NCBI RefSeq assembly: GCF_003704095.1
Contig: NW_020847607.1
Location: 620,001 to 684,000 of the forward strand
Reading direction: 5' to 3'
DNA from: Pocillopora damicornis
Lineage: Eukaryota
Length of the DNA: 64,000 bases
Made by a program: the position numbers and the translations under genes. Below the pieces are notes generated by a model. The model ran no database searches. It was not told the origin of the DNA and saw only the letters and a list, made by a program, of their open reading frames with translations. The first letter of the stretch is position 1. The number at the start of each line of letters is the position of its first letter. Below are positions 22,277 to 47,345 of this stretch, piece by piece.

Positions 22277-23395
22277 TTGTGCTCTGACTGTGGTCGGAAT
22301 TCGCCGAACTTATGACCGGGTACTACCTTTAAAAAGCTAAATTAACTTATATGAGTGCGACATTGCTATACCTTGATTAAAAATTTAAAATAAATGAATT
22401 GTGCAAATAATTGTTTGTTCTTGCAGAGAGGCTACTACTGTTGTCGACCTGTTTTAATAAAACTGGATGCAAATTTATCTTAGACTGAGATAAAATAAGC
22501 AAGGCGGAATTTTGATTGGTCAAGACTTGAACGTCATTTTGTATAGTTATGGTTGGGTTTTTTAATTTTTTCAATTAAATATGGCATGCATGAAAAAATA
22601 ATAACAAGACAATTTCATAACAAGATTAAGATCTTTGTACAAGCTCACCCTTTATTTTCCTTTCACGTCCTCTGTTAAGATATATAGCAAAATTCTCTCT
22701 TTATACATTCTCATGACTAGTTAAATTGATTTAAAATGCCTGCAGAACATTGCAACTTGCCTAATTTTGGCACTTGTTGCTCATTCTAAGGATCAGCAGG
22801 AAAGCTTTATGTTTTTTAGAGAGGCTTGTAGATGCCTCCTATAACTTTCATCATAGGTCCTTTTGGGCTCCTACATGTTTTTGTCGTCGTTGCTTTTCAA
22901 CATAACTTTGTAATAAATATAGTATAGGCTTATTCCGCCATATGTAACCTTTTTTTCTGTTTTTTTTTTGAACCGTTATGTTTTTGTTTTTTTCTTTGAA
23001 TTGCAAGCAATTACTCAGTAACGTCTGCCTTATTTCTCAAGTTCTTCTATTAGTTACTTTTTGCTGACTGTGCGAGCAAGTTTAAGTTAATCATGACATC
23101 TTAAAGATCTTTACGTTATATATTAGACAAAGTTGCATTTCAAAAAAATTACAATTAAGCAGGGGGTTTTCAATATACACATGATAATCTAAACTATTAC
23201 TTCTCTGCGTACTATCCACGTTCTCTCAGTTCTAACCTGATGAAGTTTCTATGTATGTACACTTCTGCTTACTACTTTCTAAAACCTTGCTTTGGAATCA
23301 TACATGATCTTTCATTTGCAGATCCTCCCGCTCGTAGAAAACAGAGAGCATCAGTCGAACGTCTTTTTTATACAAATTCATCTCAGACCTGCTTG

Positions 23396-24301
23396 CTAAA
23401 GATGGCTATTAAAACATTCCAACTGACCAGACTGAACTGTATTCTCGCTCGAGATACATCTAAAGCATCTAATTTTGTTCAGGAATTTTTTCATCTCTTC
23501 TCTAAACATAGGCATACGATAACTGTAGACAACTGGGTTAACTATAGAATTCGACAGATGTAATACCCTTGTACTGGAGACAATTTGTAGTCTAACCATT
23601 GCTTCAGAACAAGGGTTGCAGTTTACTTGAACGCCGGTAACCACGATGGCGGGGACCCAAAGTAGGAGAGACAAAGTTGTAACTATGATCAATGTACGGG
23701 ATAGTTTCATGTTTTGTTCCTCTGTGTGACGATTGTGAGCATCGAGTGACAGCACAGTTTTGTTCATTCGGGTGCGAATCGCCCTGTACGATGCAACAAA
23801 AATGGCTAACGAACAAAGCAGTGCTAATTCGGTGGGGATGTTAGCTTCTTTATCAATTACATCTAATGAGACCAGTGTGTAGAGTACTCCAATAGTTATT
23901 CCAGCAATCCAAGCTAAAGCAATGTTCACGATGTAAAATTTTGTACTTATGGTTCGATGACGATATGGCCAGAGTACTGCATAAACACGCTCTAAAGATA
24001 TTCCCACCAAGCAGAATAACGACGAACACGAAAATGAAATCTGAAATGCGGAGAATGGCTCGTCGTAAATGATCGCCTTCACAGTCATTTCCCGAAATGA
24101 GAGGAAAATTATTTCTAACAATGCTGCAGCGCCTATGAGAAAATCCGTCACAGCCAGATTTATCAAAAGAAAAGCAGTTCTTTTTAAGCAGAGTTTTCGT
24201 TGAACAAATACATAAATGGTAAAAGCGTTACTAGCTAATATCACTAATGCCTGGATGATATTGATGACGGAAAAAAATAAGGCAGTTGTCGAGGCTGACA
24301 T
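23396..24301 (-). CDS. Class A orphan GPCR 7
   Basis: SN(TM1), NLAVTD, SLERVY, LWVP, NPVVY; ends NSHL; first ATG 24301. Confidence 0.9.
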   Translation of the reverse strand: MSASTTALFFSVINIIQALVILASNAFTIYVFVQRKLCLKRTAFLLINLAVTDFLIGAAALLEIIFLSFREMTVKAIIYDEPFSAFQISFSCSSLFCLVGISLERVYAVLWPYRHRTISTKFYIVNIALAWIAGITIGVLYTLVSLDVIDKEANIPTELALLCSLAIFVASYRAIRTRMNKTVLSLDAHNRHTEEQNMKLSRTLIIVTTLSLLLWVPAIVVTGVQVNCNPCSEAMVRLQIVSSTRVLHLSNSIVNPVVYSYRMPMFREEMKKFLNKIRCFRCISSENTVQSGQLECFNSHL

Positions 24302-25401
24302 GGCTCCCAAAACCGGATCAATTTCAGAATAGAATCTTTGACACAACTCAGCCTTGACCGTTAACTAACAACGAACCTCCACCCGATCGCAACGGAAACT
24401 TTGAGGTTATACGAAGCACAGAGCCCCCAATTTGAATTTTATATGTTGGGACACCGCACTGCGTCATGGATAAATAACACATGCGCCGGAAGAGGAGCTA
24501 TACACATTACAAGCTATATGTTCGCCTAAAATGGTATTTTTTTTTAAGAAAGATGAGCAGTTTGACCACTTTAAAACTGATTTTGTCTCTGTCTAATTCG
24601 CCTAAAGCACAGTGCATGTAATCTGATTGACTAAAATGAAACAGCGCCATTTTCTAAAACAATTTAGCATAAAGTGAAATCTTTTCAGGACTTGATCACG
24701 AAAATTTCAGAATAAAACCCCTGTCGGCTTTTCATCAACCATTCGATCTGTTTTTATTTGCATGATTTCTCCGCTCTGTTGGATAATCAAGCAACAAGAG
24801 TGAAACAATCGAGTGAGTAATGAAAAAGGTTCATACCATAAAAGGCTAATAGGTTTCAAAGTAAAAAAAAAAAGGGGAAGGCGTGAAAGACTTCTCCTTG
24901 TCATATTTTAGGCAAAATGTTTTCCTCTTTAATTAATACGTTTTTTAAGATTTGATTATTTAGAAGCGAGTAAATCGACAAAGAGAAAATTATTTGAACT
25001 TATCTGGAAGCAGATCACATTAAAAGCAGATTAATTACTTATCTATTAAATTGCACGTCCAGAGAAATGAAAGTACAAATTTCCTAATGAGTTGTTTCCT
25101 TCCGCGAAAACGTCCCTCAGGCTCCGCCGAATACATAGAGAAATAATAACTGTTTTCTGGATTTCACCGATAATTACTACGTCTGTGTACTTCACTTTTA
25201 GATTTGAGATGTTGGTCAGCCTAGAGCCTGGTTTCATTTTCCCAAGTACGGCTGTCATATTTGTTGAACGTTTCTGGCGAAAAATAAACTTGGGTAACAT
25301 TGAATTACATTGACATCGATTAGCTCAGTGCATTTGCTGTATAAGTAATTTACGAATGTTGAAAATTTCCTTTCTTGAGCATAGAGAGGGTGGTACTTTC
25401 C

Positions 25402-26335
25402 TTAACTATAGGGAATTTCATTGAAATCCAGCATTGCTACTGGTTTGGACAGATCGTTTGGGCTTTTTACACCAGCCTTTGAACTTCTCCTGTTATTCCG
25501 TGTCCTTCTCGGTTTTAACTTACTGAGTGGCTCTTTAAAGATAGGCATCCTAAAGCTATAAATAACTGGATTTACGAACGAGCTCGCTATATTAAAAAGT
25601 GTTGTAGCATAGAGAGCACCCATAGATATACGACATTTACATACGGCGTACACAAAGTATAGAATGCTCCCCGGCAGCCAACAAACACAAGAGGCAGCTG
25701 TTACGATGCACAAAGTCTTCGATAGTTTTATGTTTTGTTCGACGTTATTTCGACTATTTCGATTGATAGCCGGGACATCTCTGGAATAAAGTTTATTCCG
25801 AATGCTCCAATAGCTGCCGCAGATTATGGCCAGAGCGGAAAATATCATAGAGCAAATAATGTACTGAGAGATTTCATGACTCCACATTTTGGCTGTATCT
25901 AATAAAAGTAATGCACCCACGAATCCGCCGATAACCCAAACGGTGACAATACACCAAATGTACGATTTGTTCGAGGCGAGCCGATGGCGAAGAGGACAAA
26001 CCACAGCATACGCACGTTCCAATGAGATAAGAACAAGAAAAAATAAGGACGAACACGAAAACATAGTAGGAATTATTGCAGAAAAATCATCTTGGTTTGA
26101 TACGAGGACTTCGTCTGTTTTATTTCCTTGAAATTGCCCCTGTTCCAATGGCGATTGGTTCAGTAGCGCCAACAAGGAGGTCAGCAATGGCCAGGTTTAT
26201 TAGAAGAAACGAGGTTCGCTTCAGACGAGCACGATAAATCCAGAACACATAAATTGTAAAAATGTTCCCGATTAGAATAAAAACGCTTTCAACAGAAATT
26301 ATGCTGCAAATAATGACTACTGCAACGTTTGTCAT
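25402..26335 (-). pseudogene. Class A orphan GPCR 8 with frameshift after TM2 (~26145-26120)
   Basis: TM1-2 (GN, NLAIAD) in ORF 26335-26120; TM3-7 (SLERAY, CWLP, NPVIY) in a different frame, ORF 26187-25402. Confidence 0.8.
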
Positions 26336-26589
26336 TGTACGACACGCAGTTAAATTTCGTCTTCAAGATTTTTCTATAACGCTGCAGTGAACAGTTTTGA
26401 TGCGTGCTTTTTAGAAGAGACGAACGTAACAGCAATACAATGATAATAATTCAAAATCACATGGTGTGATATCTGATTTTCTCTCTACAGTCTTTTAACG
26501 CAGTTATTTGCATAACCACTACAAGATCACTTTTTCAGCCAAATCCTTTGATTTCATTGGCTTCTCGACTTGCTAAATATACAAATGAC

Positions 26590-26591
26590 TG

Positions 26592-26627
<36 letters not shown>

Positions 26628-26742
26628 TCAGGGGGAGAGTATAACAGGTAATTTGGTACTATCAGCTGAGTTGATAACGTAAATAGGCCACCGCAAAACG
26701 TTTCAAAGCCGACGTTTCGAGCGTTAGCCCCTCGTCAGAGCC
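26590..26742 (-). mobile_element. ~150-bp repeat carrying a hammerhead ribozyme core (Penelope-like/retrozyme-type)
   Basis: Reverse complement aligns with 57494-57645 over its whole length. Confidence 0.75.
26707..26742 (-). ncRNA. Minimal type I hammerhead ribozyme motif
   Basis: GGCU-CUGACGA-G-GGGC-UAAC-GCUC-GAAA-C-GUC^-GGCU: intact CUGANGA and GAAA boxes, 4-bp stem II, palindromic ACGU helix III, GUC cleavage triplet. Confidence 0.7.
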
Positions 26743-27713
26743 AAATATACATTTATCCTAATAAATGTAGCTCGTGAGTACTGCATACATCAATCAAATC
26801 TGAAATTGTTTTAAATTACTTGTCAAGGATAACACTACAAAAAGCATTTGCGCTTGATCGCCAACATCGTAGGAACATCATAGGCCATTTCCTCAAACAT
26901 CACATCTCCACATTTGCTGCTTTTCCAGCGAAAATTTATTGATTTGCATATAAAAATTTGGAATCACACTTTTTTTATGCAGCTCGTCAGATTATAAAGA
27001 AGGTTCACAGATTTAGCTAAAAGGGCAGCTGAGTGGTATAAATTCATTATAGAACCGAGAGAACTAAAATATCGAAAGTTTTCTTGGCTAAGAAGAATGC
27101 ACGTTTTTTTCATTTCCACTTCGCTATATAAGTCAGATTGCATAATAATTTATCCGAATGAGAAGTGGAAGGAAATTCTCAAGTGGGACTCCACATTTAG
27201 AATCTGGAGCAACTGGTTATACTTGAGGGAGTCCCCACAAGACCAAACCATCATTCATAGGTACAGTTAGCAGTTGAACGTTCCGTCGACCATGTTTATA
27301 ATAGGTCAGTTCCCAGGCCCTCTCATATAGGTGTCTCGATGACTTAGCCCACATAGCTGGTAAATTCGTGTGCTTAAACTCAATTGCGCAAGCGTGCCGC
27401 TTTGTATTCCCATTATGCAAGTTGACGACGTTTGTAGATGCACTGAAGCACGGGAGGAATTTCTGTTAACGTAGCATGTAAATAACCACGTTAAAAATGT
27501 TATGAAACTATTGATCCATGCGTCAGTTGTATTTTAATCTAGATACGAATTACTTGAGAAGTTTGAAGAGCAATCGAGAATTATTTAACCCCTGAGCATC
27601 TTTCTCTCACTCCGAACTTTCTGCGTGCCTCGTGTCACAGTGAACGCGCAATAAAGCATGACCCACTTTTAAATTACGAACCAAGACGAGGGGAACCTTT
27701 ATAAAGAGCTTTA

Positions 27714-28134
27714 GAGCCTATTTATACGGTCTCCGGTACCTTAGGAGACAACCCCCCAAGTCGAGTTACCCTGGCCGAGCTAACTTGTTACTAATCTGTT
27801 TAAGAATTCAACCAATCGCGTAAATGACATTACACGAAAATGGAAAACCTGTCTCGGGGAGCAAGACAACTCGGGAGAGAGAGGTATCTCGCCTTAGCAG
27901 ATAGGGTAATCCTATCACGGGGGACAACTTTTTTTCACATGAACAGTTTAGCTCGTCTGCACGAGTCGACACGGCTTAAATTTTGTCCAATATGTTTCCT
28001 GCATAGGTTTTACGTTTTGGACTATGGAAGGGGCAGCTGCTACAACTCGTAACTCCATGTAAACGCTCCATACAGGTGTTTCGCGCAGGAGGGTTGTCTG
28101 AATAAGTATCCAGCTTGACTATATAAATAGGGTC
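27714..28134. mobile_element. Non-autonomous PIF/Harbinger-like MITE
   Basis: Termini gagcctatttata / tataaatagggtc are near-perfect inverted repeats flanked by TTA on both sides (27711-13, 28135-37). Confidence 0.6.
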
Positions 28135-31100
28135 TTATAATGTAAGAATCAGTCAAAATTCGTCATCTTACGGTTAGTTACGAATTTAAGTAACGTGAAA
28201 TAATGTAACGAATCTCTCTATTAATTTTGGCTTTCTTGAGGTACTTACAAAAAGATAAATAAATAAACATCAGAAAGTAATTTAAAACCAACCGTTAGGA
28301 AAACCGAATATTTTCGCCTCCATTTCACACGACATCACTACATGTACACCTTACCTATGAAGGAACAGGCGGGTCATTGATGAAAACTGATGAAATTGGG
28401 TTGGACTATTTTGGAAGAATTTTGGAAAAGCTCCTCCCTCATGGCACGTTCTTGACAGAAATACCGTATTCAGATCATTTACATATCAACTCATTAATCA
28501 GTATGAATTTAACTCCTAACAATTCTTCGGTAAAAAGTTCAAATTTGCAACATGCACTGACGGAAAATGTTAGCAGACGTTTAGGAATAACGTCGGTTAC
28601 TGAATTGTACCTCTTTCAGTTTGAGTATGTTGCCTATTGCCCAAGCTGATTGACTTTCTCTATCTCTGTGATAACGAATATACCGCTAATGAAGAGGTCC
28701 TATGACGAAATATAAAAAATTAGTTTTCATTCGAAATGCGCAATAGTTATTAAATGTACAGAGTCAGGCTTAAATTAGTGTCATGTTTTACTGGTAGTTG
28801 TAATTAAGTCTTGATGTACACATTATTTAAAAGATGAAAATGAAATGATCAACAATTGTATTTTCAATTTTTTTTTTCATTTTTGACAGTATCGCACAAA
28901 CGGATTCCCTTTAATCTCCTGATGATTCTGGTGTAATTCGAATGAAAACCAGATTACCTTCCAATAAGGCTCTCATGAGGCTGAATATGGTCTTCATTTT
29001 CAATTATTTCGTTACAGTGGTGTCAGGTGTTGTAAGTTAAATTGCAAATACGCTAAGAAGTTTTAATCACGTTTTAACGCCCCTTACAGCTTACGAGCTA
29101 TAATCTAAAAGCTATTCCAGGTCCTGTTCTGAACATATCAAAAATAATAAGATCCCCGACGCAAGTCCTCAAAAAATTTTTTGTTTCTTTCATCGACTCA
29201 GTTTTGAGTTTTGAGAAGCGAATGAGATACGTGTTTATATTACGTAAATTTGCAGGTGGAAAAATGCGGTCGGCTTTTAGAAAAGAATGGACCATTTAAT
29301 GAGTATTGTGTGACAATTATGTATTCCTCTTTTGACAGCTTTCGTAGATAAGGCACATTCTGTACCTCACGTATAGGAAAACGTATCGCCCCATATTCAA
29401 TTTCACCAGCATGGTGGAGGTTTGTAAGGTAAGTATAAAAACAGCAGTTGAAGACTGAACACGAACGTGAGTCATCTTAAAAATGAGAAATCATGTTTTA
29501 TGTTACCTTTGTTACAAACTGTATTTTCCTCTGCGCCACTGTAAGCCAATTTTGAGCGCAAATCTTAATTACCAAGTTAGAGTTAATCATATTCTAAAAT
29601 ATCCGTTAAGCTGAAGAGCCTGTTTCTAGTTTTAAAAAACTGAAAATTCTTTAACATCACAAAGAACCGCCTCTTTGAAAACTGACAAAGGTTGAATGAA
29701 AGGTTTTGCCGTAAATTCTGTCATTAACGACAGGTTTACAGAGCTTATAGTTTTAATATTTTGCCAATTTTACAATAGTAGTCAGCGAGTATTCATGTGT
29801 TGATTGCGATAGTCTTACATACAGCTTTTTTTCTCTTTCTCTCTCATTTAGTTTTTTTCAGTTTAATCTTTGCTGAAACAACGTACTGACATTTCACAGC
29901 TGTCAGAGACAATTTCATTATCGAAAATTTTACAAAAGGCAGTATTTCACAGCAACAAAATGCCAAATAACGGTTTCCGAGGTGTTGCTAAAGTCACTGC
30001 AATATAGCTACGGTAATACAGTGCGATCAATTGAATTCGTAATTACTTATTCTTTTTAAGCGAAAGAAAAGCTCTTTGCAAATAACGTGACCATTCCAAA
30101 AAAAAATTTAGTCATCAGTTTATTTATTATTCAGTATCAAACACCGCTCTCCATACAACCGACCGAAAATACGCCCTCTTAGTTAAGGTCTGTAGTTCAT
30201 TCGATCTTATTGAGAGGCAAATTAATGCGGAGGCCATTACGGTTGAATGTTTCATGCAAAATGACACGATCTAACTTTCTTTTCATATTTATTAGTAGGT
30301 TTCCCACTGTATTTAGACCTACTGTATTATTTTTCCCGCAAACTATTAGTTCAGAGTGAGTTCAACTACTTAAACAAATGAGATCGAAAAGGCAAAGTGA
30401 AGCTGGTTGTTGCATGAATATTTCATGTTGAGTTGACAAATACCCGAACATTGCTTAACCGAACTTCTCACCATTATCGAGGAGATATTAAAAAGTGTAA
30501 ACTCTTAAAATAGTACGAAGGAAATTGAAAGACAAAGAATAAAAAACAACTTTTCCTCTTATCATCGTAGAGGCTTTAAAATTCGTTATCTTAAAGTTCA
30601 AATTTTGAGGTGGCATTTCATTTGTTTGTTTATATTCATTTCTACAAGCAAAATTCATATTTGTAAGTTTGGAAAACTTGTGAAGCTACAATGCAGGCAC
30701 TTGCAGTTTCGAGCGAAGAATTAATCATTTATATATATCTATTGGTAAAGCATAAAGTACAGGTTAATAGGTTCACTCTTGCAAACCTTTGAAATCTAAT
30801 GCAGATATTTTCCAGCTGGTTAAATAGTGTGACATATTACATGTTTTAATTTCTACAGGACATAATTAGCCTTGGTAAGTTAACTTGATGATTTTAAAGC
30901 TCAAACTCTAAAAACTCAAATTGTAAAAGAGAAGGTTCCAACAATGCTATCTTTACCAGCAGTATTTAACAAATAAAGCCTTGAGAAAGCTAGAGTTTAA
31001 ATACATCCAAAATATTTATTGCGCGACCGAGCTACGTTTTAACTAAAGCTGCACAGAATAGTATGATAGCATAATGTAGTTGTAGCATCATCTATTATTC

Positions 31101-31169
31101 ATGAGTAAATTATATAACCATTTTCAGCCTTTAACAGTGTTTTCCTTCATGCGAATCCTTGTTTTGCAG

Positions 31170-34100
31170 ATGCAGCGAGTTGCTTTGTTGCTCCTGGGAT
31201 TCATGGCCAGCTGTGAAGGTAAGGCAACAAACGTTTTAAAATATTGGATCACGTTGAAGGCTCATGATCACAGGGTTTAATTTGTTAGTTTATTTTTTAT
31301 TGTTTGTTTGTTTGTTTTCATATATGTTCCTTTCATTTTAAGATTATTTATTGAAGATTCAACTATAGTAAAATTCCGGACTAAGGGCCGACGGATAATA
31401 TCAGAAAACAATTTTCCTTCAAACTGACCTCTCTAAAGAAATTCCTGAGAGAAATTTGGACAAAGCGATACGAAGACTGATTTTAACGTTCGAGTCCAGA
31501 ATTGGAGTACAAAGTTTAAGATCCAAACACCAAATCATTATCGTTTAGTTTTCGTTTGTTTTTCCTTTTTACGCTGTTAAATGTTCATTTTGTATGGCCC
31601 GTGTGGAATTTATCAGGACAAAAAAATATTATGTAATTTATTCGTATTAGTATTCAACGTTAGGTTTAGTCATTTTCCGTTGATAGAGTTAGTTTTTCAG
31701 TCATTTTAGTTTCGCTTGTTATTAGCGGTGGTTTGTTTTCGCAAATCGCGGTTTGGAATTGCATGAAATGGATCCGAAAAACATGATACAGCAACTAATT
31801 TGTGTGTTTCGTTAAGTTCACTCTTTTCTTTTATTAGCTATATTTCGAAATTTTGTGTTTAAAGCTTTCTGTTTTAGTTTTAATCACAATTTAATCTCTA
31901 CACCATAAACGGAGTGGCCATCAGGGTAGAATCTTGAATAAAAGAGAGTTAAAATTGTATGGTAGATATATTACTCGTCTAAAACTTAGCAACAAAATAA
32001 GGTCTCGTTTAAAATTTTTCTCGGGTACAAGTGCACCCTGTTAGGTTACTTACTCGACTCGATATTTCTCAGGGAATAGATAGCGAGTACTATAGCCAGT
32101 AAGGATGCAGCATTTGTTTTAGAACGCCAGTGGATCTATATTAATTATTACATTCGTGTCTGTCATTCTAGGACTTTCACATCTTGTTGGATACTACCCC
32201 CTGAATTTCTCAAGTAAAGCAAATGACTACAGTCCGTCTAAGAATCCAGCAGGGATCATCTCCAATGCTCAGCCTGCACTGGGGCATTATGGCGAAGTTG
32301 GTGGATCGTATCAGTTCACGGGAGCGCGCTCACCGCCAAGTTATATCTATCTTAATGAGTCATATCATTTAAATACGAGGTAAATTAGGTGTTTTTATCA
32401 TATAATATCTATTCGGAAAGGTAATGTAAGGCTGAGAGGCCATTTGCCAAACCCAGCCGAGCTTATGTCAGTTTCTGTAGCATGAAGCGACGAGGGTTTT
32501 TTCCACCTCCCTCTCCTCTCCTCCCCTTCCCCCTCCCCTCCCCTCCGCTGGAAGGGATGCTAGTCCATCGCAAGTGACCCACTCCTGATCTCCCTGACAG
32601 CTATCCGGTGCCCTCCTATAATCGTGAATGGACAGACGTAAGGGTAAAATGGCTTCCTAAGAGCACAACACAATTATCTGGCCAGGGGTGGGAGTTGGAT
32701 ATTTTGATCCGGAGTACACCTTTTCCACTGGCTCGTCGCGCTCCCTTCAATCAGGAAGGTACTTGTAACATAATTTCGAGGCGCATGACCAGATATTTTG
32801 AGTCTAACAATAATTTAAGAGATAGAGGGCAGGATTTCCCTAAGATTCAGTCTCCAAACGTAATGCTCTCCTGGTGTTTGACAAAGAGACTCTTTGCTGA
32901 AGCGAAAGACGATATTACTTTTATACCATATCGAGTAAATAAGCTAACATGATGACTCAGTCGTCAAATAAGTTTACCGTGTTAATACGCAAACGTTTCA
33001 ACTGGCACCAGTGACGACAATGTCTGTCGCATGGAGAACTCTTAAAATTAGATGAGAACGATAAAACTTATGCCCCTTCGAAGCAATTGAAATCCTTCCT
33101 GTATTGTGCCCTCCTTATCTTGCTTTTCAGATTCTCTATTACACTTCTCGTCTGGGTTTTTCCACAAGGCAGAGATGGAGAAATTATTTCCTACTGGAAA
33201 AACTCAAATTACGGAGTGAGTATAACACTTGAAAACTCTCGCCCAGTCTTCCACGTCAATTCTCTTGATCGGATCACGAAGTACTCCGTAAAAAGTAAAA
33301 ACAACCTGTTGCTGAATGAATGGAGTCACATCGCTGGGGCATATGACAATGAGAGTCAAGTGGCAAAACTTTACGTGGATGGAATAGAAGTGGCAAACGC
33401 AACAGCAAAATGGATTCCGGAATTAGCGACAGAGTCCCCTTTGTGGCTTGGGTACCTGTTCAAGGGAAGGCTGTCCCAAGTTTGGGTTTTCAAGAATGCT
33501 CTTTCTTTGTATGATGTATCTCAAATAAAAGATTACCATAGACCATCAAGCTCAAGTAAGCAGACATCCAGTTTTGTTAATTTGTCTTGCTTGGTTTGTC
33601 TCAATGTATATGTTTTGCGGGGTATCACTCCTTAGTGTATGTATGATTCAAACAAAAGACAAATACAGCTGAGCTACGGTAATTTACTTATGAGTTTTCT
33701 TTAGTTAAACAAACTCGAAACACTACTCAAGAGGACTTTTTTAAATTTTACAGGTTTATCGACTGCTATTTTAACACCAGTTGAATTATTACCAACATCA
33801 TCTATGACACCCTCCAACAATCCATTTCCAAACACGATTATCAATCCAACGATAGTCAAGGTACCCAATCCAACGAAAAACACGGAACTCAATCCAACGA
33901 TTACAAGATTGTCCTATCAAGCGACGATTCATAACACGTCAACTGTCAATCAAAGCTTTACGTACGCCACACCCGCTGTCAATCAAACTTTTCAGTACTT
34001 TACGCCCACTGTAAATCAAACTCTTCCGCTGACCGCCTTCCAGACGGCACCATCGGATGCATCGGCAACAGTAAAACAGAATGCTACGTCGGCAAGTCTA

Positions 34101-37100
34101 ACTTTCAACATTACACCATCTCGTACGATTGCTTCGCAATCGATACTTGGAAGTAGTATAAGTCAAGGTAGGGTTAGTGTATTTATTGTGTATTTACGTG
34201 TTAAATACTAACAAACATGTAAAAGGGAAGTTTCGATTCTAGGGAACGGGTAAACACCGCATGCGATCGTCTCGTTAATCGTGCTATGTGAAGTTAATTA
34301 TTACTCCCTCAGATAAGATATTGTGCCATCAAAGGGCATGGCCTCTCCTCTCGTATTTCGTCAGGTTTACTTGACAGTTGGTTGGCACACTGATTTTAGG
34401 CCGAGAGAGGCATGGTGAGAGTAAAGTGTCCTCCCTAAGAACATAAGTGTGAAGGTACTTATTTGAGTAATCTCGAGTTCAAGGCCTATACCCAGAGGCC
34501 ACCGCGTCTCTTGCGATTAATGTACCGGGAGATTTTTCCGGATTTTTAATGCAGATTAAAGAAGGCGGGTATGGTGATAAAAAAAAACCTGTGATTGCGG
34601 ATGCATGATTCTCGGACCGTACTCTTCAAAATTTGTGTTATCAGTCCTGAATCCGAGGGAGGTCCAAAATGGTACTTTTAATTTCAAAAACTAGGAGCCA
34701 AGTTTGACACGCGTTATTTCTTTTGTCTCACAGTCCAGCCCCTCAGGTGTTATGAGTCCTTATGCCAAGGATCAATGATCAATTGCAGTGAAAATAACTT
34801 GAAACAAAGAGTTTGTGAGCCGAGTGACGATCGATGTGCCTGGGCCTATACGCGACTTAATTCAAGTTTTCAAGTTCTGCACATGAACTGCACTTCAAGC
34901 AATTTATGCAAAGACGCTGGCCCGTCATGTGATCTGCTGATGAAAAACAGAGATGTGTGCTGCGACTATTTGTGTTGTGACTCACCACTTTGCAACAAGC
35001 CGAAATATTTGCAAGGTAGGCTAAGTTCGCGTAAAAAGCCTACAACGAAGGCGTCTTTGCATACACTGATTGTGGCTCCTTTGACCGGCTGCGGGGACTA
35101 AAGGGGGAGGAGAGGCAGTAATAAAAAACACAGGTTCAAAAAAAAGGAACTTACGTCTCACGTGTAGTATTATCGTTCCTATAATTTCTAAACCAATTCG
35201 GAATAGAGAAGTTTTTCGAATGAGTGTCGCTAGCGCAGTTTTTAAATGAGTGTCGAACGTAATCTGAAATTTCTTTGGTTTTGCCTCATTTTGCTTTGTG
35301 ATTGGTCCAGGAAAAATCGCGTCAACCAATCAGATGCAAAACTAAAACCAATCACGTCTTAGTCGCCCGCGTTTTCCCGCGCGTTTTTTTACTTTGAACC
35401 CTCATCGGTTCTTCAAGGTGTTTTCCTTATTTCTGATTGGCTGTTGTAATTGGTTTGGTTTTGGCTTTACGACAATCCAATCAAAAAGCTCTCTAGCTGA
35501 TATCAAGTGCAGAGAAACACAAGGGACTAAGTCGCGCTTGAATTCAGTTTTGCAATTGATTGATTCATAAGCGAGGGAGCAGGAGTTCAAGTTAAACAAT
35601 CAGAGAGCGTAGAAAAGCAAAACCAATGCAATCGCGGGTTATTTTCAAAACATGAGTGAAAAGGGCTTAAAATTATGTGTAGTCTGGTTGATCGATTGCT
35701 CTGAGCCGGAACAAAAAATACAACAAAAGAAACAAAAAGAATAGAGCCTAATTTTTGAATGGTCTAACCCATCAATTAGCAAGTTTTTTTCATTCACACT
35801 TTTTTCAGGTGGGAAGTCGTGCAAAAGAAAACCCGATCTCGTCGCGGTCATCTACGGAGGCATTGAGGTCATCCGAGGACATAACGAAAGCATCACAATG
35901 AATGCGTCGCTTTCATATGACCCGGACGTTGGCATCGGTGACTACTCGGGAATGAACTTTACCTGGTTTTATGGCGAGATTACAGGCAATTACACCGGCC
36001 TACAGACAGCTACGAATGATAGTCAGACAGGGTTAGACGAGTCGATTATTCGTTATTTTGGGAACGATTCTGGTATAGAAATCACCTTTAATACAGCACC
36101 ACTGCTCCTCAACAGGACATACGTGGTTAAACTGGTTGTCTCTAAAGACTATCGCGACTCGAGTGCATATCAAATTATTCAGTTGGTGAAAGGAGACCCA
36201 CCTGAAATATACCAACGGTAAGCGAGTTGTTTTGTGCCGTTCAGTCAGATTGAATTAAGCAACTGTTAACAAAATTCGTTGTATTTACATACACAGTTTT
36301 AGATTGCCGCTGGTTAAGTGCAGTGGGCGCGGTTTCCCACACCATTTTTACCAAGTTTTTTTGACGGAACGATTTTAAGGTAGTTCTGAGAACGTAGTAA
36401 CTACGAATCATGGGATAGCTCCTCATAAGTAGAATGCTGTAGTCGTTGTTAAAAAAGTTCAAGCATTCTGGACGCATTCAAGTGATTGTGTTTCTTTCCC
36501 CTAAGCGCAGCTGTCCGCCACACAACCGTTAAGGTTAGAAATGAATATTGTTTACGTTAGAAATTTTTCTCCCTCGTCAAAAGCAATTGAAATACTTAAT
36601 TGACTATTAACTTGCCTATCCTTGACGAGCAAGTTTCGTCATGCACCTGAGCCAAGAGCCATCCAGCTTAAGCCGGCGACATACCCGGCGATTTAAACGC
36701 CGATCGGCAAAAATCGCCAGGTGTGCTCGATGCAATGATTGCGATTTTCCCCGATCGCGGCGATCAAATTTGCCGCGATTGGCCGATAAAATCGCCAGGT
36801 GTGTCGCCGACTTAACTCTCCAGTTATTTGTCATAATGTTTTGCCATTTTTTATTTTTAAGATGCCTAGTAAACTGTGGACTGAAAGTTGTTCCACAAGT
36901 TAAACTCAGTATTCAGTCACAATGCCAGGGGTCCCTGTGCTCCAATATATCTTCGTATGAGTGGATACTCTATGAACAATCCTCTTCATCTGCAAACAAC
37001 GGCATCTGGATTCGAAAACAACATTTACAGCTTATCACAGACACACCACTCGGTTCAAGTAATATCGTCATCAAAAAAGGTTCCCTCTCTGGGAGAACAA

Positions 37101-40100
37101 ATTACCGTCTGGCATTGTTTGTTCAAACTACCGCCGGCTTACCAGGGATGAGTGCATACGACATATCCACTACGTCAGCGCCTACAGGGGGCACATGCAC
37201 GATCACTCCCTCCAGCGGCATCTCTCTGAAAACTGACTTCAACCTGACATGCAGTAACTGGAAAAGTGACAGCATACCTCTGTCCTACCAGTTTCAACAT
37301 CAACTAGAGAACGGTCTATACAGTATGTTGTTTCATGGTTTTAACAACACGGTTAGCTCTTGGTTACTGCCTGGTAATCTGTCGGAAAACTTCACTGTAA
37401 AGGTCAAAGTGATAATAACTGATTATGTTGGTGCCTCTGCTGCGGTGACAAATTTGTCTGTGCAGGTACGACTTTATGTTTCCAGTTGTTTTGGTCATGA
37501 CGTCATTAGGAAGAACTGATGACGTTATAAAATTATGATATCATTGCGAAGTGACCATTTTTGTGAAATTAACACCCATATTTTCCATTTCTTCAGCTGT
37601 AAAGAAGGTTCGAGGTATTCGTTTAGTAGAGGGGGCGTGAGTTTTGAACGATTCGTTATCCGTTATCCGAACCTCCCTTATTTTTTCTTATTTCTTAAAG
37701 AAAAGCCTGGAAAAAGCAAGCGTTTATATTTTGTAGCATGATTATTTTGATTGCTAACACAAGCGAGTTGGTCAGTGAATTGTGATCGTATAGATTGTAG
37801 AAATTTTTAGAATGTCATTACTTTGTTGAAGCGAAGGGGATTTTTCTTCAAATCCCCCAAGGGGTAGAACTATTCCTATTGACTCTGAGATATAGTAAGA
37901 TTAGTTTCTGCTGTGGCCTTTATTTTTTCTTTTCTTACAGTCGATTGGTTCATGTTTGACTTTCTGTAGGTGAAGCCATCGGAGCTTTTGAGACCAGAAA
38001 ACATCAGCAGCTTTTTGACAGCTAATGATAGTTTACTTAATGACGTCATCCAGGATGGAGACTTAAGTAGAGCTGCACAAATTGCAAATTCTGTCCTCCA
38101 GACTGTTTCCCAGGATAGCACCGTGAGTTTACAGAATAAGGCTAAAGTAAGTCAGCTTGATGTTGAGTTAGTGATTGAGGTGAAAATTGCTCCGTAAACA
38201 GCACAATTCTTTTATCCTCGTTACTCTCACCATTGTAGTTAAAATTTTGTCTTTTTGGTAAGGGGGGAGGGGTGGTGAGCAAATTTCAATCCATACAACT
38301 ACGATTAAATTGATTCATGAAACTTACACAGTGTCTCAGAAGTGTCTTCTTTCATCTCCACAGATTCAAGATTTTCTGATCAAAAAGATCATCTCTCTAC
38401 CCGTGCAAAATCTTCCAGACCTTCTCCAAAGCACGTCTGTAATTGGCTCTGCTTTACAGGTTTCGGAGAGAGTGTCCTCCAACACTCTGGTATGGAAATT
38501 GTTTAAAAAAAAATGAGCATTTGATAATGAGTATTATCAACATTTACGATTGCTCTCTATCTTTGAAATTTTAGGAGTCCGCGATGTCTGCTGTTGGTTC
38601 AATGACATCACTTCTCTGGAGAACCGCCCAGTTAAAAGAAGTGGCCTATATACCGCTAGTCACGCAGTCTGCAGAGAACCTGGGCACATGTCTCAATAGT
38701 GTGTTGAAAACTGGAGCAGTAATAGCGTCAGGAGATTTCGGCTCTGGGCTTCAAGAGCAGGTATAATGTTAAGAACACCTGAGCGATCATACATATTTCA
38801 TACAATAGGCTAACTCATACATGTGTTTTGATTGGTTCTTGTCTATACAACCTATTAGAGGACAGACGCATAGATGGCGTCACCGTCAACAGATTTTGTT
38901 TCTTTATTATATAGAAAAAAATATTCTCTGTCTTTGTGGGTCTGTGCAATTGGAGATCACAGAAGACATAGAAATGTGCTAAGACAAAGAGTCTGAAATG
39001 ATCAAGGAACATGGGAATGAGAATGGGAAGAGAACCTATGATACTCACAAACTTTTCAGCTAAGATTGGTCGACAGGCGTTGTTGCTACGTTATACGATC
39101 ACTTTGATGATCGAATAATGACCGAATTTTGAGTATTTTCAAGGGCAAAAGGATAATGCTTCTACTTCGTAAAAGTCGTTCATTTTAAGTGCAAATTGTG
39201 GATACATCTTTAATCTTCAAAAAACCGTGTGTTTATTTAGAAGTACGCACTTTTAAAACTCCGAACAGTAAGTTTTATGAAGCCTGGTGGGCCAATTTTG
39301 GCCCATTCTTCTCTAGTTTAGGGCTCTTCAAAGCGAGGTCGCGATCAAATTTGCCGCTTTATTCTGCCCGATGTTTTTAAGATTTGATAAACTGCCTGTG
39401 TGCTTATCTTTACAGGGTGTGAAATTCGTTAAGACCGCGATGCAAACAATTAGTTTAGTTGCTGACGCAGTATTAGCTGTTAGAGCCCCGGATGAGGGCA
39501 TGATCTCCATATCAACGAGGGAGCTGAGCATGACCTTAGGACGCCACAGCCCCGAGAAACTTGCGGGGTTGAGGATCGAAGCAGCGGGCGGGGTAATTGT
39601 TCTTCCTTCTGACAGCCAATCATTACAATTTACTGTCACTGCAAAAGGTTACATTGATACTCAGGTAAGCATGCTTATCAAAGTATTCTCAGAGTCATCT
39701 TAAGAGCGAATAAGACATGCTATTGACTGTGTGTGTGGGGGGGGGGGGGTCAGTCAGGAAAAAGTTTTGGTTCGTGGTCTTGGGAACCAATTGGATTTTT
39801 CTTAAGAATGTAACTCAAGGGCAAAAAGATGTAGGTGACCGAGCCACGATTTACTTTTGCATCTGATTAGTGGAGGGTGGCGCATAAGTTTTACTTGACC
39901 AATCACAGACCTTTGTAAGGTAAAATAGTAGCAATGTCTGTTACTTTTTACACTCAATTGAATTCTATTTTTAGCTTTTAATCATTCATTTATGGCAGAT
40001 GTTGTCAATTCCATTCAACCCCTACACTTGGGACGGAACAAGGAAGCGAGTCAACTCTGATGTCTTAGCTCTCGACTTAAAAGACGAAACGCGTAATGTG

Positions 40101-43100
40101 ATTAAAGTGTCAAATCTCTCAAGCGACATCATCATCGTTACATCACTACAGCCTCAAGTCATCGCCTTGGAGAAGCCGCAGTATTTTACCAAAAATGAAA
40201 ATCTACGTTTTCATGAGATAGATGTTGAGTTCGAAAACACTCTGGTAAAGCTGGAAATCACTCCACAAGAGTCCACTGTAAGTCTGTTTGTTTACTTGCA
40301 GTATGATCAGCGGCCAACTACAAAAGTGCATGAACTCAACGCTACTATGTCTAAGTACTCAAGATGTGTTTGGACGTCAAGTGCGCAAGACAAAAACGAG
40401 GGCGAAACTGAGTGTTCATTTAGTCCATTTGAACCCATCGAATTCTTAGCTAAGAGTCCTGGAAAATACTTTCTTGGTGTAAAGATTTCCAATGCCAGCT
40501 TGATTATTCCCATTAAGAGGCGTAAAAGATCTTGTTTCGGACAGGGACGGCAAAAGCGCTCCTGCGTCGAAGTCAAGGACCCACCGCCCACCCCATCCCG
40601 GGGCGAAAATGTATCAGTGGTGCCAGTTTATGACTCTCGAACGGATTATAACTATACTCTGAAGGTAGCCCAAGAGAGCTGTGTGCACTGGTCAGAGGAG
40701 CGAGAAATGTGGATAACGGACGGCTGTCAGGTACGCTTAGGTCATATCAACTCGAAAAACGCGAGAGATCTCCAAAGGCATGTCCCTATGCCTACTGAAG
40801 GCATGTCCGTATGCCTGCTGAAGGCATGTCCGTATGCCCTCTGAAGGCATGTCCGTATGCCTTCTGAAGATGATCGCAGTTGCTAAAAGAACTGTAGTCT
40901 GATTTTTCGTACTTTCCAAAATTATTTTGTACTGTTCAGTATTTTCATATAATCATCATATGTAGTCTGAAAGAAAGTGACGAATAAATTTTTTTGCTTT
41001 TACTTGCAGGTTTTATCTGCACAATTAAATGGATATCTCAACTGTTCTTGCAATCATTTAACTTCGTTTGGGGGAAGCCTTTTAGTGAAACCGAATCCCA
41101 TCGACTTCGACAAGGTCCTGATCGAATTCAAGAAACTGGGAGAGACTGGAAATGTTGCCGTAATTGTAACAGTGGCCGTAGTTTTTCTAATCTATATTTT
41201 CGTGCTTGTTATCGTCCGGAAAGCAGATAAAAAAGACAAGAGGAATGTAAGTATGATTGATAGCAATATGTTTTTATTTGTTTATGGGATAAAAATACAT
41301 TTCCTATGTTACAAGTTAAAATCTAAAGTGTACAGTGTATAAAAGATGTAAAAAGATCCCCTATTCTAGTGCTAAATTATATTTAAAGACTAATCTATTT
41401 ACATAGGTACTCTTAGAGTGGACCGTGTTGAACCCGGGTTTTTCAGAGGATTTCCTACTAAGGTTATAATGGGTCGATTTTATTCTAAGTAGAAAAGGCA
41501 GGAGAGGATAATTCACAGTGTTAGATACTTTCTTGAAAATGTTACGGTCTTGTGTTTCCAGAAGGTTATGGACAGTGATATGTTAGAACAGAACTGACAG
41601 CCACATAGTATACTCTATGCACAAATTTGTCTACGCTGAGTGGCAAAAGTGCCAGGAATATTCCGTCCCTTGACTAAAAAAGGCTTTTGACTGCGGAGAT
41701 TTTTATTCAGTTTTAAACCCTTCCTACCCCCGAAAACAAAAAAAAAGCAAACAATTCTGTATATTAGTGAATTCTCAGGTCTGATAGAAAATGAGAAACA
41801 TTGTATTCGAGTGGGAAACTACGGGTTCAACCAGAAAGGAAAACAATATGGCGTGCCCGGACTTTTGACGCTGATTGAAGCCATTTTAGAAACTGACCCT
41901 TGTCCCCTCCCAAAAAAAACTAACAAAACAAAAACAAAGAAAACAAACAAACAAACAAAAAACCAAACAGAATGAACCATAACTGCCCATAATTACCTTT
42001 AACTCGTTAAGTGAATGAAATTATCTAACTCTAGGTTGGAGGATATTTCATTTTTAGGAAAAGGCGCCTGTTCATAGAATTGTTAATGAATATCTTCATT
42101 TGTATTGCTTTCTAGAATGGTGCGCCGATTCAGTTACCTTCGGCGTCGAATAACTTGCAAGAATTCGAGATAACCATTTCTACAGGTGTCTGGAGAAATT
42201 CTGGCACAACGGCCAGGGTTGCAATAGAAATTTACGGAACTAATGAAAGCACTGGTATTCTTGAGCTCAGCCCGGAAGAGCCTGGTGCAGAGAATTTGTT
42301 ATTTTCTCGAGCTAACACAGACGTGTTCGTTCTTAAGGTTAGCAATCCTCTTGGCACGATTCAAGGAGTGCGCATCGGTCATGATATCTCTGGAGAGAGT
42401 CCTTCGTGGTTTCTAGAAGAAATTATGATTTTAGACAAGCAGTTTAACAACTCTTGGACATTTACGGTTAATCAGTGGTTTGCCCTTGAACGAGGTGACG
42501 GTCGAATCGAGCGTACCTTTGAATTAACGCCCAGTCAACTAGATTTCAACCAGGAGGTCATGAAGCGATGGTGGAAAGGCCTCACTGAATCACATATTTG
42601 GGTTTCAGTTGCAGCAAAGCCACGAAAAAGCCGCTTTACAAGAATACAGCGGGCGTCATGCTGCCTCTCTGTGCTATTAACGGCTATGCTCGCTAATGCG
42701 ATGTTCTATCAATTGGATGGTGGCACTGAAGAGGTCTTTCAAATTGGACCTCTAAAATTTTCGTGGAGACAAGTAATTATTGGTATTGAAAGCGCGTTAA
42801 TTGTGGCACCAATTAACGTTCTCATAGTATTCCTGTTTCAAAAAGGAGGAGAGAGGTCAGAGACCAGCACTGGTCGTTTTTCTAAAGCAACCCTGTTGAT
42901 ATATCTTGCTTGGTTTTTGATCATCTGCGCATGTGCAGTTTCGGCGGTGTTTTCAGTCTTCTACAGTCTGATGTGGGGAAAGAGTATCAGTGAAAAGTGG
43001 CTTTCCTCAATGCTGATATCGTTCAGCCAGGATGTAGTAGTCACTGAGCCTGTGAAAGTTTTCTTCATGGCGATGTTTGTAGCGGCTATTTTCAAAAGGA

Positions 43101-46100
43101 AAGAAAGCAGAGGAAAAGGATATGAAAGCATCGAGGAACCCCAAAGTAGCCCCTCAAAACAAAGGTTATGGAATCTAGAATTATCCAAAGTGGAAGAGAT
43201 GAGAAAGAATCAAGCCAGAAAACAAAACATTTCGCAGTTTTTTGTGGACCTTTTTCTTTATCTTATTTTCATTTTTTTGCTAATGGTGGTTTGTTATGGT
43301 AACAGAAATGACCATCGATATCTCATGACAAAGTCCATCCGAGAAGGATTACCAAAGTTTAGCACGGTGGGTAATTTCATTACAAGAATTGCTGTAGTTT
43401 ATCATCAAAAGAAGTCGCATCCATTATCACAACCCTTTACACTCGGTTTTCTGCCTTTGTTGATATACCAAAAATAGAGAGAGGATGAAAGCAGACTAGA
43501 ATGAATCAACTTTGGAAAATTATTTTGTATCACTTGCTCAGTCTTTCTTATCACCTTTACAATCCGTTTCCTTGGCTCTACTCCTGTTTAAAAAATTAAT
43601 TACGCGAACTCTGCCATATTTGAACCAGCTTATTTGCGCGCAAAATGTTTTTACGTACAAACGATAATTTTCATCGTGTTCTTACGAAACACATTGCTTT
43701 CTCTTACTTCATCACCCAGGTACTGAACGATAAGGAGTTTTGGAGGTGGTTAAACGATGTTTTCATACCTGGCGTGTTTGTTGGCAAATGGTACAATGGC
43801 CAAGAGGAGAATCAAACCATGTACATAGGTGATAAACATTCTCTGCTTGTAGGAATGGCGCGAGTAAGGCAGCTGAGGGTGAAATCAAGTAAGTTTCGTC
43901 GTCAGTTTTCCCAAGACCTACCAAACAACCCCATTTAACCCATACGTCATCCAGTGGCTTCAAACTCATGGATAAATTAGTTTATACGACATTGGGTAAA
44001 ACTTAGTCGTGTACACAACACAGAGTTTAGCATAAGATATATTCATGTATGCTGCACGGGATGAAATACTGTCAAGAACTACAATCTTAGTTGTTCATTA
44101 CTGCCACAGCTTATTCCATTTGCTATACCATTGAGGAAGAAGTATGCGTATGGTCTACAAACTATACAACTTTTCATCTACACCCATGAGAGGTTTATTG
44201 CAAATTATAGCACTGATCACGTTTTGTGATTCCAAAACATGACATTACTTAATGAAAATTGTCTCCAAATAAGCGATGATCATGCGATAAACGCCCCCAT
44301 TTTTAATCTTGCCTAGCAACCAGGCCGTTTTCCTGTTAGATTACCAACTTTTATCATGTCCCAGATCCTAGCAATCTGTTTTAATAATAAGGATTTACTC
44401 TAGAAGGCATCCTAGCCCTTGACTCGAATAATGATCTGACGACTAAGTGTGAACCGCTTTCTTTGCTTTTTATCGTGGATAGTGGTCTGTGGAGGAAAAA
44501 ACATTTTATTCCTCCACAGACCGCTCAAAGGGCAAAAAATCGAGTCAAAACTGATCATCTTTCCTTTTATGTTATTTTTTAATTTTTTCAGCCCCGTGTA
44601 AAGTCTTGGACTATATGAAAACTACCTTTCCGACATGCTACGAGGGATTCTCGCAAATTAACGAAGACAAGACTGTATTTCATAAACCGGGATGGAACCC
44701 TGTCGATAACTCTACGAGTGATGACGAGCTGCTCCGACTCTGTCCGAAGCCATGGCGATACCAAAATGCTGACACAGCACCAAAGTGGGGAAAGTTCTCG
44801 TTTTATTCAGGGGGAGGATTTGTTGCAGACCTCGGATACGATACTTCCACCGGATATAGCATCGTTGAGAACCTTAAGAGTTATTACTGGCTGGACAAAC
44901 AAACCAGAGTTGTTATGATGGAATTTGCCGCGTTCAACCCATCCGTAAACCTTTTAACTGTTGTGACGTATTTCTATGAAGTGGAAGCATCCGGGTACAA
45001 GGTGCCTTTCACAAGAAGTAATATTATTTCTTTGAATTCGACGGAAACAGCATCTAATGAGTTTTATCTGATCTGCATACTTTTGTTCATCGTGTTCATT
45101 CTGTTCTTCCTCGGAAGAGAATGCTATAAGCTTTATAGGCAACGCTGCAGATATTTCAAGTCCATCTGGAATTGGATCGAAATCGCTCAGATTACTTTCT
45201 CTGTTTCAGCTGTGGTAATGTATATTTTACAAACGATCAGGGTGTCTGCAACGATCCAGAAATTGCAACAAAACATTTATGCGAATGTAAGCTTTCAAGA
45301 AGCTGTCGTTTCGCTGGAAGTGGAGAATGCAACGCTTGGAATTCTCACTTTTATCGTCATTTTGAAACTGTTGAGAATGATTCGGTTTAATTCTCATATT
45401 GCAGTGTTTTCTAAAACTCTTCAGACATCCATGCGTCTTCTTTCATCATTCAGCTTCAATTTATTTATCATTTTTGTTGCTTTCTTGCACTTCGGCATTT
45501 TGATTTTCGGGAATGGATCTGAGTTTTATTCGTCGATTCTTAAGGGAACATACTTTCAACTCGAACTCACTCTGGGACGAGTGAAAGCGAGGCCTATCAA
45601 TACTTTAGCAGAAGCAAATGAAACATTTGGAAGAATCTTCGCTGCTCTACTACTATTAAGCCTTACTATTCTATCCATGAACTTTTTCATCGCTTTAATG
45701 AATGAAGCACTTTTTGAGGCAAAGGATTCAGTGAATCAAAGTGAACTTTATGATCTAGTGGATGCATACGACTGGCCAAGGAATGAGGAGAGGAGGGCTT
45801 TATTCGATGTGGTTAGTAACGCTATGAAACGGATGAAATTCCAGCAAACCTCCACCGCGTTGGAAGAAACAGAAGTAACAAACGTCGCCTTAAATTCTAA
45901 CAGAAACAAGTCAATTCATTTTGATTTAATCAGCAAAGCCATCACAGCTTTAAGGAAACGGAAGGTCCAAGAATCGGTACATGAAAAACCAAGAAACATC
46001 AGAAGAAAATCTCTCTTTGATAGAATAAGTTCTATTATCCAAAAGCGTAGAGATGATAGCTCTGAAGGAAACTACAGACCAAAAATGAAAAAGAAAGTGA

Positions 46101-46949: not shown

Positions 46950-47345
46950 AGTACGGTATACGATATCCTGATGTCCACTATCGGCAGTTAACATGGCGAT
47001 GTAATAACACGCCAACAATCCATTGAGGCATCAAAATCAGCCCCATATGTACTTGAGAAGAATTCTAACAATATCGAAGTGACCATTTTGATACGCACAA
47101 TGAAAAGGTGTCATTCAATAATTTTTTCCTTGCTCAACTGGCAGCCTCTCATAAAGCAGGAGTGAGATTGACATTTTCCGTATCGCTTTTTGCCGCAGCG
47201 TGATGAAATGGAGAACAATTTCTCCAATCTCTAATATAAACATATGCTTGAAAGTTTTGTTTAAGGAGCGCGAGAACATCATGTGTGTATCTTCGCGGGA
47301 TCTTCCCCGTAAGACAAAATAAACTTGATAACATCAACAGGTCCA
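46950..47345 (-). pseudogene. Decayed ankyrin-repeat gene fragment
   Basis: Frame-broken repeats GPVDVIKFILSYGED / RDWRNCSPFHHAAAKSDTENV / MTPFHCAYQNGHFDIVRILLK(fs)YGADFDA / AMLTADSGHQDIV, with stops and frameshifts. Confidence 0.7.

Follow-up and report, generated by a model that had tools for sequence, protein, structure and literature searches.

A probable coral receptor-channel gene of the PKD1L/PKDREJ type with a laminin G, mucin-like and predicted three-finger ectodomain

We analyzed a window of 64,000 nucleotides from the coral Pocillopora damicornis (NCBI RefSeq assembly GCF_003704095.1, contig NW_020847607.1, forward strand), which corresponds to C4242:620001-684000 of the genome that was searched (234.35 Mb in 4393 contigs); positions below are those of the window. 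The sequencing runs in which this stretch occurs bear the labels coral metagenome or coral transcriptome. Between positions 29399 and 46306, the plus strand carries a gene that begins with a signal peptide, a laminin G (LamG) domain, a mucin-like stalk and a 13-cysteine exon of Ly6/uPAR (LU) type, and continues into REJ, GPS-like, PLAT and polycystin channel sequence. In the explanation that we consider probable, it is a coral receptor-channel gene of the PKD1L/PKDREJ type with a putative core of 11 transmembrane (TM) segments. Its LamG and LU domains would form a ligand- or matrix-binding head, the GAIN/GPS region would relay to the core, and the core would have a PKD2-type partner.

The 5' part of the gene is documented by RNA. 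Logan contigs of four RNA runs were aligned to window positions 31100-37000 and gave six GT..AG joints (31218/32172, 32379/33131, 33555/33754, 34167/34734, 35015/35809 and 36217/36862). All six are present in one 5804-nucleotide contig of run X1 and in one 2423-nucleotide contig of run X4, two runs from different studies, and run X10 contains four of the six. Domain and homology searches were run exon by exon and, together with these joints, define the following features:

29399-29428, plus strand: 3' end of an upstream 5' exon, with an in-frame ATG at 29411-29413 and a gt donor at 29429 (X4 RNA contig).
31170-31218, plus strand: signal-peptide exon (MQRVALLLLGFMASCE-), ending in phase 1 (sequence; joint 31218/32172 in X1, X4 and X10).
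32172-32379, plus strand: LamG exon A, the N-terminal laminin-G/pentraxin-like part, phase 1 to 2 (RNA joints; homologous exons in loci L034, L035 and L037, described below).
33131-33555, plus strand: LamG exon B, ending in phase 1 (Pfam Laminin_G_3; RNA joints).
33754-34167, plus strand: serine/threonine/proline (S/T/P)-rich mucin-like stalk, phase 1-1 (composition; RNA joints; S/T/P exons in L034, L035 and L037).
34734-35015, plus strand: predicted LU three-finger domain with 13 cysteines, phase 1-1 (AlphaFold2, Foldseek, VIA-align; RNA joints).
35809-36217, plus strand: first REJ exon, REJ profile positions 81-207, starting in phase 1, with an early conserved cysteine (GGKSCKRK) (Pfam REJ, E 1.9e-23; RNA joints).
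36862-37468, plus strand: second REJ exon, REJ profile positions 208-416, 3' end approximate (Pfam REJ, E 4.2e-38; joint 36217/36862).

The six 5' exons thus form one message that is in frame at least through the second REJ exon, which confirms the proposal of an earlier note, made from the sequence alone, that these modules belong to a single transcript. Genomic splice sites are canonical GT..AG at every boundary, and runs of N are absent from 29000-47000. The same joints corrected the 3' end of LamG exon A to 32379 (not 32380) and established the phases of the introns. The intron after the signal exon is of phase 1, the LamG module as a whole is 1-1 with an internal intron of phase 2, the stalk and LU exons are each 1-1, and the first REJ exon begins in phase 1. 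The phase-1 boundaries that the earlier note had described were therefore recovered from RNA, and its suggestion of exon shuffling fits both these boundaries and the use of the same phase-1 acceptor in paralogs that carry other heads. No exon-skipping joints were reported in the RNA contigs of 31100-37000, a type of assembly that drops rare forms. The X1 contig extends about 3.9 kb beyond 37000, so the message reaches well beyond the REJ region.

At the 5' end, the 28 nucleotides that precede 31168 in the X4 contig map uniquely to 29399-29426, where the genome continues with AG|gtaagt. The ATG at 29411 is in frame with that at 31170, lies in a favorable context (A at -3, G at +4), and is preceded by an in-frame stop at 29375. 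Translation probably starts at this ATG, six codons before the ATG at 31170; one contig stands behind this start, and the six-codon-longer N-terminus still reads as a signal peptide.

The identities of the LamG and stalk modules agree with what had been read from the letters. Laminin_G_3 matched 33015-33632 with E 1.8e-16 and 61.1 bits against a cut-off of 27.6, and the LamG domains of orthologues scored 40.6-67.1 bits. The stalk exon at 33754-34167 encodes 137 residues, 42% of them S, T or P, and contains six N-x-S/T sequons and a repeated TVNQT motif, in keeping with the N-glycosylation-rich spacer described earlier.

The LU exon, read in the frame 34736-35014, encodes 93 residues with 13 cysteines, an LRCY start and a CCDSPLCN end, as had been noted. 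The general signature of LU proteins (LxCxxC and CCxxxxCN) appears in the window as LRCY...C and CCDSPLCN, and in orthologues as L[KR]CYxC and CCDSD[FL]CN. The three-finger fold, which had been conjectured from these motifs, was examined by structure prediction with an alignment of 13 LU-exon rows (A1). The AlphaFold2 model had a predicted local distance difference test score (pLDDT) of 84.2 and a predicted template-modelling score (pTM) of 0.70, with a helix in the region of the third loop. Foldseek returned three-finger proteins for all of the top 50 matches, with probabilities of 0.99-1.00 for the top dozen (e.g., uPAR and erabutoxin) and, for uPAR, a TMq of 0.64-0.65 and E 7e-3. In VIA-align, domain D3 of uPAR matched with Z 10.1 and a root-mean-square deviation of 3.3 over 84 residues, followed by LYPD6B (Z 9.4), LYPD6 (9.3), GPIHBP1 (9.1), C4.4A (9.1) and Lynx1 (8.6). 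The matches span LU residues 1-92, and 41 chains reached Z of at least 8. The language-model neighbours of the exon, all of them uPAR/Ly6, activin or TGF-beta receptor clusters at 0.80-0.85, are a lead only. On the strength of these models we accept that the 13-cysteine exon encodes a three-finger LU fold.

Two features of the LU sequence deserve mention in their own right. Finger 1 of the window copy (34736-34790) is atypical when compared with A1, having C-x4-C (LRCYESLC) where orthologues have C-x2-C (LKCYxC), and it carries a five-residue deletion that leaves the cysteine count unchanged. An additional C8-C10 disulfide was also considered. Two related orthologues lack both cysteines, but P0010 lacks only one of them, and for this reason the proposal stays weak.

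Downstream of the LU exon, the REJ profile (PF02010) scored 83 bits on the first and 132 bits on the second of two consecutive exons (cut-off 25), covering positions 81-416 of 452. The match is thus short at its N-terminal end, which bears out the earlier description of a short REJ region. The acceptor and phase of the first REJ exon are the same in orthologues and paralogs, and the 3' end of the second was set by a block conserved with L037, L009 and L034. The remainder of the gene was delineated from Pfam matches, sequence motifs and conserved blocks:

About 37970-38152, 38343-38492, 38578-38763 and 39413-39667, plus strand: four coding blocks between REJ and GAIN (conserved with L037, L009 and L034; no Pfam match).
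39993-40736, plus strand: GAIN-like region, at whose end lies the first half of a candidate GPS (Pfam GPS positions 2-23, E 0.048; conserved block).
40986-41276, plus strand: second half of GPS (CSCNHLTSFGG, with an HL|T site), putative tethered stalk and TM1 (Pfam GPS, E 0.0024; motif; conserved block).
42116-43440, plus strand: PLAT and the TM segments that follow, 3' end approximate (Pfam PLAT, E 1.1e-14; conserved with L034 to 43369).
43700-43900, plus strand: putative exon in which the polycystin (TOP) domain begins, ends approximate (open reading frame (ORF) 43624-43935 reads as coding).
44600-46306, plus strand: last exon, with the rest of TOP, a six-TM PKD channel and a cytoplasmic tail, 5' end approximate (Pfam; stop at 46304-46306).

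Two exons share the GPS match, and each half (E 0.048 and 0.0024) lies below the cut-off of 22.5 bits. The sequence CSCNHLTSFGG, with its candidate HL|T site, is followed by a segment that reads as hydrophobic. PLAT (PF01477) scored 55.6 bits against a cut-off of 23 in the exon next after that of GPS and TM1. The last exon matched Polycystin_dom (E 3.9e-22, 79 bits), PKD_channel (E 9.8e-35, 120 bits) and Ion_trans (E 5.4e-9). Its pore-loop region reads TLGR; polycystin-2 presumably has LGD at this place, in which case TLGR would fit a PKD1-type rather than a PKD2-type subunit.

These modules suggest how the protein may work. The chain would run from the signal peptide through a concanavalin-like LamG domain, a glycosylated stalk of about 137 residues, a single LU domain and an N-terminally short REJ region to GAIN/GPS. 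LamG and LU together would constitute a ligand- or matrix-binding head that the stalk holds away from the membrane. Engagement or pulling of this head could then act through REJ/GAIN and a tethered stalk, cleaved at HL|T, on the 11-TM core, which most likely partners a polycystin-2-type subunit; such a complex may serve a mechanosensory or chemosensory role. A ligand-binding role for LU is argued from position, since the same slot holds a lectin or a CUB domain in sister genes. Furthermore, the matched LU structures (uPAR, LYPD6, GPIHBP1 and TGF-beta receptor II) are all binding modules, and LU is read as a binder for that reason.

The LU exon is not confined to the window. A HMMER search with this exon against 1.84 billion representatives gave 14 matches, two of them unrelated low-complexity proteins and the other 12 real relatives; 11 related exon ORFs have E between 1e-44 and 1.7e-4. 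The relatives are ORF calls of 93-183 amino acids that run into intron sequence, which marks them as the same exon in other genomes; their identity is 36-51%, with the exception of P0001 (95%). The contigs of P0003, P0006 and P0007 are too short to show the neighbours of LU. Five other loci revealed the order of modules:

L034 (ENA ERZ25067538): LamG A, LamG B, S/T/P stalk, LU, REJ, REJ and, further on, PLAT.
L035 (ENA ERZ27245416): LamG A, LamG B, stalk (TVNQT motif shared with the window), LU.
L037 (NCBI GCA_029204205.1): LamG A, LamG B, stalk, LU (in which the frame changes), REJ, GPS, PLAT.
L009 (ENA ERZ25073751): LU, REJ, REJ, GPS, PLAT; Ig-like ORFs, not LamG, upstream within 10 kb.
L008 (Logan SRR31575928): LU, REJ, REJ.

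Because the order of modules is kept across these loci, the gene is a conserved orthologue in several coral-like genomes. In the tree, the second REJ exon of the window lies closest to that of L037, with which it shares 71% identity. Among the 1.84 billion representatives, no long protein contained this type of LU, and the reason lies in gene models that split the locus. The models of GCA_029204205.1 cut L037 into four products, a LamG protein of 200 amino acids, an LU protein of 93, a REJ protein of 355 and another of 340, so catalogues built from proteins may not contain the architecture. We found no paper in which polycystin or REJ is combined with LU or Ly6. The earlier note had not recognized the architecture; that remark needs qualifying, since the gene is not a one-off. 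Two peculiarities of L037 (MU826871.1) may be recorded here. At 11569-11903 its LU exon changes frame after LKCYRC, by assembly error or real frameshift, and the intron after the LU exon contains about 1.5 kb of a simple GCT/GTT-type repeat. In L009, three Ig-like ORFs (3180-6252; weak Pfam ig matches, E 0.03) lie upstream of LU in the same or a neighbouring gene.

The window gene is a member of a large coral-expanded family in which one conserved phase-1 REJ exon stands behind interchangeable heads (LamG with LU, C-type lectin with stalk, and CUB). At least 107 exon-level matches to REJ exceed the Pfam cut-off in this genome. In the closest paralogs the REJ exon also begins at profile position 81, with the same phase-1 acceptor and at the same codon. 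Upstream of it, L011 and L013 have a C-type lectin domain (Lectin_C, E 2.8e-8 and 1e-13) and S/T/P repeats, and L012 has CUB domains (E 2e-17 and 6e-13). Classic PKD repeats occur in L014, which is a more remote member. Trees of the second REJ exon grouped genes of the LU, CUB and lectin types into a single subfamily (93/90), within which they left the branching unresolved, and monophyly of the LU type was not rejected (approximately unbiased test, p 0.35). A genome-wide search revealed no second LU-polycystin, and the LU exon was found in none of the paralogs. The only other match to LU in the genome, on contig C3511, proved to be an ordinary standalone Ly6 gene adjoining an Ig/FN3 gene. We found no paper on the expansion of this REJ family.

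Two further observations concern the family at large. About 20 REJ exon matches are gathered within some 190 kb of contig C1535 (101000-293700), and several contain stops, which makes pseudogenes likely among them. In L010 (C4136:17000-22700), a paralog whose head could not be assigned, a retrotransposon-like insertion lies just upstream of the REJ exon, with two related sets of ORFs that resemble gag, protease and reverse transcriptase by eye.

Several results weigh against the explanation that we favor. None of the 13 LU family members reaches the Pfam gathering score, the best sub-threshold values being E 0.0024 for UPAR_LY6, 0.0042 for Activin_recp and 0.0056 for QVR. The window copy itself matches only PLA2_inh, with E 0.35 for the 139-residue ORF and 0.07 for the 93-residue exon; we take this family to belong to the same Pfam clan as the LU families. 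The single exon found no match at E of 10 or less among PDB sequences, and the profile of the LU family found only the ALK1 ectodomain (E 0.21). Since all curated LU models stay below threshold, LU membership rests on the predicted fold and the cysteine signature, and the model leaves the odd number of cysteines (13) unexplained. The Ig-like rather than LamG sequence upstream in L009 suggests that the head varies even among genes of the LU type. Furthermore, the linkage of the 5' exons to GPS, PLAT and channel is inferred from the extra 3.9 kb of X1, from genomic continuity and from conserved order. Most of the RNA contigs show 95-99% identity and therefore derive from related genotypes or species.

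Other explanations of the LU exon must be weighed against its role in a binding head. The domain might be a structural, disulfide-rich cap that has no ligand of its own and is held by a staple at the beginning of the short REJ, where it would stabilize the junction of stalk and REJ. The staple may consist of the invariant odd cysteine of LU and the conserved one at the start of the REJ exon. One of the 13 cysteines is indeed an invariant candidate for an unpaired residue (C75 in A1), and a cysteine is found 4-5 residues into the next exon in 5/5 LU-type loci that include that exon (the window, L008, L009, L034 and L037). The REJ matches of the subfamily also lack profile positions 1-80. However, the CUB-type paralog L012 keeps that cysteine without having LU, which weakens the argument from the staple, and lectin-type paralogs do not have it. 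Moreover, the short REJ is shared by all paralogs, so LU does not replace the missing part of REJ, and LU domains are generally binding modules, as is well established. We regard such a cap as unlikely. A quite different proposal would make LamG, stalk and LU a separate secreted or glycosylphosphatidylinositol (GPI)-type gene and its fusion to polycystin a read-through or an artefact of assembly. The splitting of the orthologous locus into separate products by the gene models of GCA_029204205.1 speaks for it. Against it, the LU-to-REJ and REJ-to-REJ joints share contigs with the signal-peptide exon in two independent studies, the LU exon has neither a stop nor a hydrophobic GPI signal and its frame runs into a phase-1 donor, the order is kept in five other loci, and no RNA contig was seen to skip or to end at these exons. 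This reading is largely refuted, and we consider it very improbable.

A last group of explanations ties LU to the channel. Lynx1 acts on nicotinic receptors and Quiver/Sleepless on Shaker, and the LU domain could by analogy be a tethered, toxin-like modulator, one of the two options that the earlier note had offered, that acts in cis by folding back on TOP or the pore. The predicted fold resembles those of Lynx1 (Z 8.6), Lynx2 (8.0) and muscarinic toxins (8.3-8.7), sub-threshold Pfam matches to QVR (Quiver) occur in 5/13 LU family members, and the exon is kept at 36-51% identity with an invariant cysteine framework. These points are offset by the closest paralogs, which fill the same slot with C-type lectin or CUB, ordinary ligand-binding modules, and by the order of the gene, which places LU about 1000 residues N-terminal, before the whole of REJ/GAIN, and thus not adjacent to the pore. 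Binders unrelated to channels (uPAR, LYPD6, GPIHBP1 and TGF-beta receptor II) also match the fold equally well or better. A ligand-binding head is consequently the likelier role, and we give little credence to a modulator in cis. Still less do we give to an elaboration in which LU is docked on TOP of a polycystin-1-like/polycystin-2 complex and is displaced by a LamG ligand or by force on the stalk, gating the channel. If true, such docking would be a self-contained 'tethered toxin' switch in a receptor of the TRP family.

Some features of the introns and of the surrounding sequence complete the description. Low-depth unspliced RNA contigs cover part of intron 2 (32440-33071) in three runs and derive either from a repeat or from pre-mRNA. 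In the same intron, RNA mapping skipped 32503-32557, a low-complexity stretch rich in proline. Intron 5 contains one further element:

35237-35433, no strand assigned: dispersed non-coding repeat (RNA word depth 100-557 with many loose ends in all four runs).

The depth of this repeat compares with 3-34 for the exons, and the loose ends differ on both sides. It is probably an element resembling a short interspersed element or a miniature inverted-repeat transposable element (SINE/MITE-like) that is embedded in many transcripts. Pieces similar to it were seen near 6947-7096 and 8718-8900, by eye and in translated ORFs only. Upstream of the gene, ORF translations at 3540-10324 and 12747-28000 point to an apparent M13 (neprilysin/ECE-like) peptidase and an array of intronless ORFs resembling G-protein-coupled receptors (GPCRs).

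To our knowledge, receptors of the polycystin-1 family are poorly understood sensors, and their ligands are mostly unknown. A constant REJ-GPS-11TM core with swapped heads is a natural experiment on the role of the ectodomain, and LU and LamG are small, defined and expressible domains suited to ligand fishing. The size of the REJ family hints at a diversified repertoire of coral surface receptors, which might serve in fertilization, in the sensing of touch or chemicals, or in the recognition of partners. Split gene models make architectures of this kind easy to miss in protein databases.

Among known systems, adhesion GPCRs (e.g., ADGRG4, ADGRD1 and ADGRG6) combine a pentraxin/LamG head with a mucin-like stalk and a GAIN domain. 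The window gene would share with them a LamG/pentraxin-like head, a glycosylated spacer, and GPS with a tethered stalk in the same order, and the L035 orthologue has similarity to pentaxin (E 1.1e-4). The likeness is a functional analogy only, since their membrane part has seven TM segments, whereas that of the window gene would be an 11-TM polycystin that includes PLAT and a TRP-like channel region. The resemblance to LU proteins (uPAR D3, LYPD6/LYPD6B, C4.4A, GPIHBP1, CD59 and Lynx1) lies in the predicted three-finger fold (Z 8-10, with about 75-88 residues aligned), the LxCY start and the CCxxxxCN end. Those proteins are secreted or GPI-anchored and have 8-10 cysteines, whereas the LU domain of the window lies in mid-chain of a multi-pass receptor and has 13, an additional CC pair among them.

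Coral and sea anemone PKD1 proteins with WSC, PKD repeats and REJ have been described (PMC4890752; PMC8846589), the GPS cleavage site is conserved among coral and sea anemone proteins (PMC4890752), and polycystin-1 of Nematostella has a gentle-touch phenotype (bioRxiv 10.1101/2024.11.20.624413). The window gene shares superfamily and phylum with these classical members (the skeletal REJ protein of Acropora and the Nematostella polycystin-1 of type II hair cells). WSC, PKD repeats and a complete REJ set these apart, however, and the window gene is a different paralog, of a short-REJ subfamily with swapped heads. Human PKD1L2, PKD1L3 and PKDREJ and sea urchin SpREJ3-6 resemble it in REJ, PLAT after TM1, TOP and a six-TM PKD_channel and probably in an HL|T GPS, as well as in having modular, variable ectodomains (PMC1934368). 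In contrast to these proteins, it lacks REJ positions 1-80, PKD repeats, WSC and LRR. The modules listed for the ten sea urchin and five human members of the PKD1 family are C-type lectin, EGF, SUEL, PKD repeats and WSC; LamG, a mucin stalk and LU are absent from that list (PMC1934368), and also from the modules of the coral and sea anemone PKD1 proteins described. Given that variable ectodomains are already known in the polycystin-1 family, the LamG and LU head is a variant rather than a new kind of receptor, and it makes the LU fold one more of the modules from which polycystin ectodomains are built.

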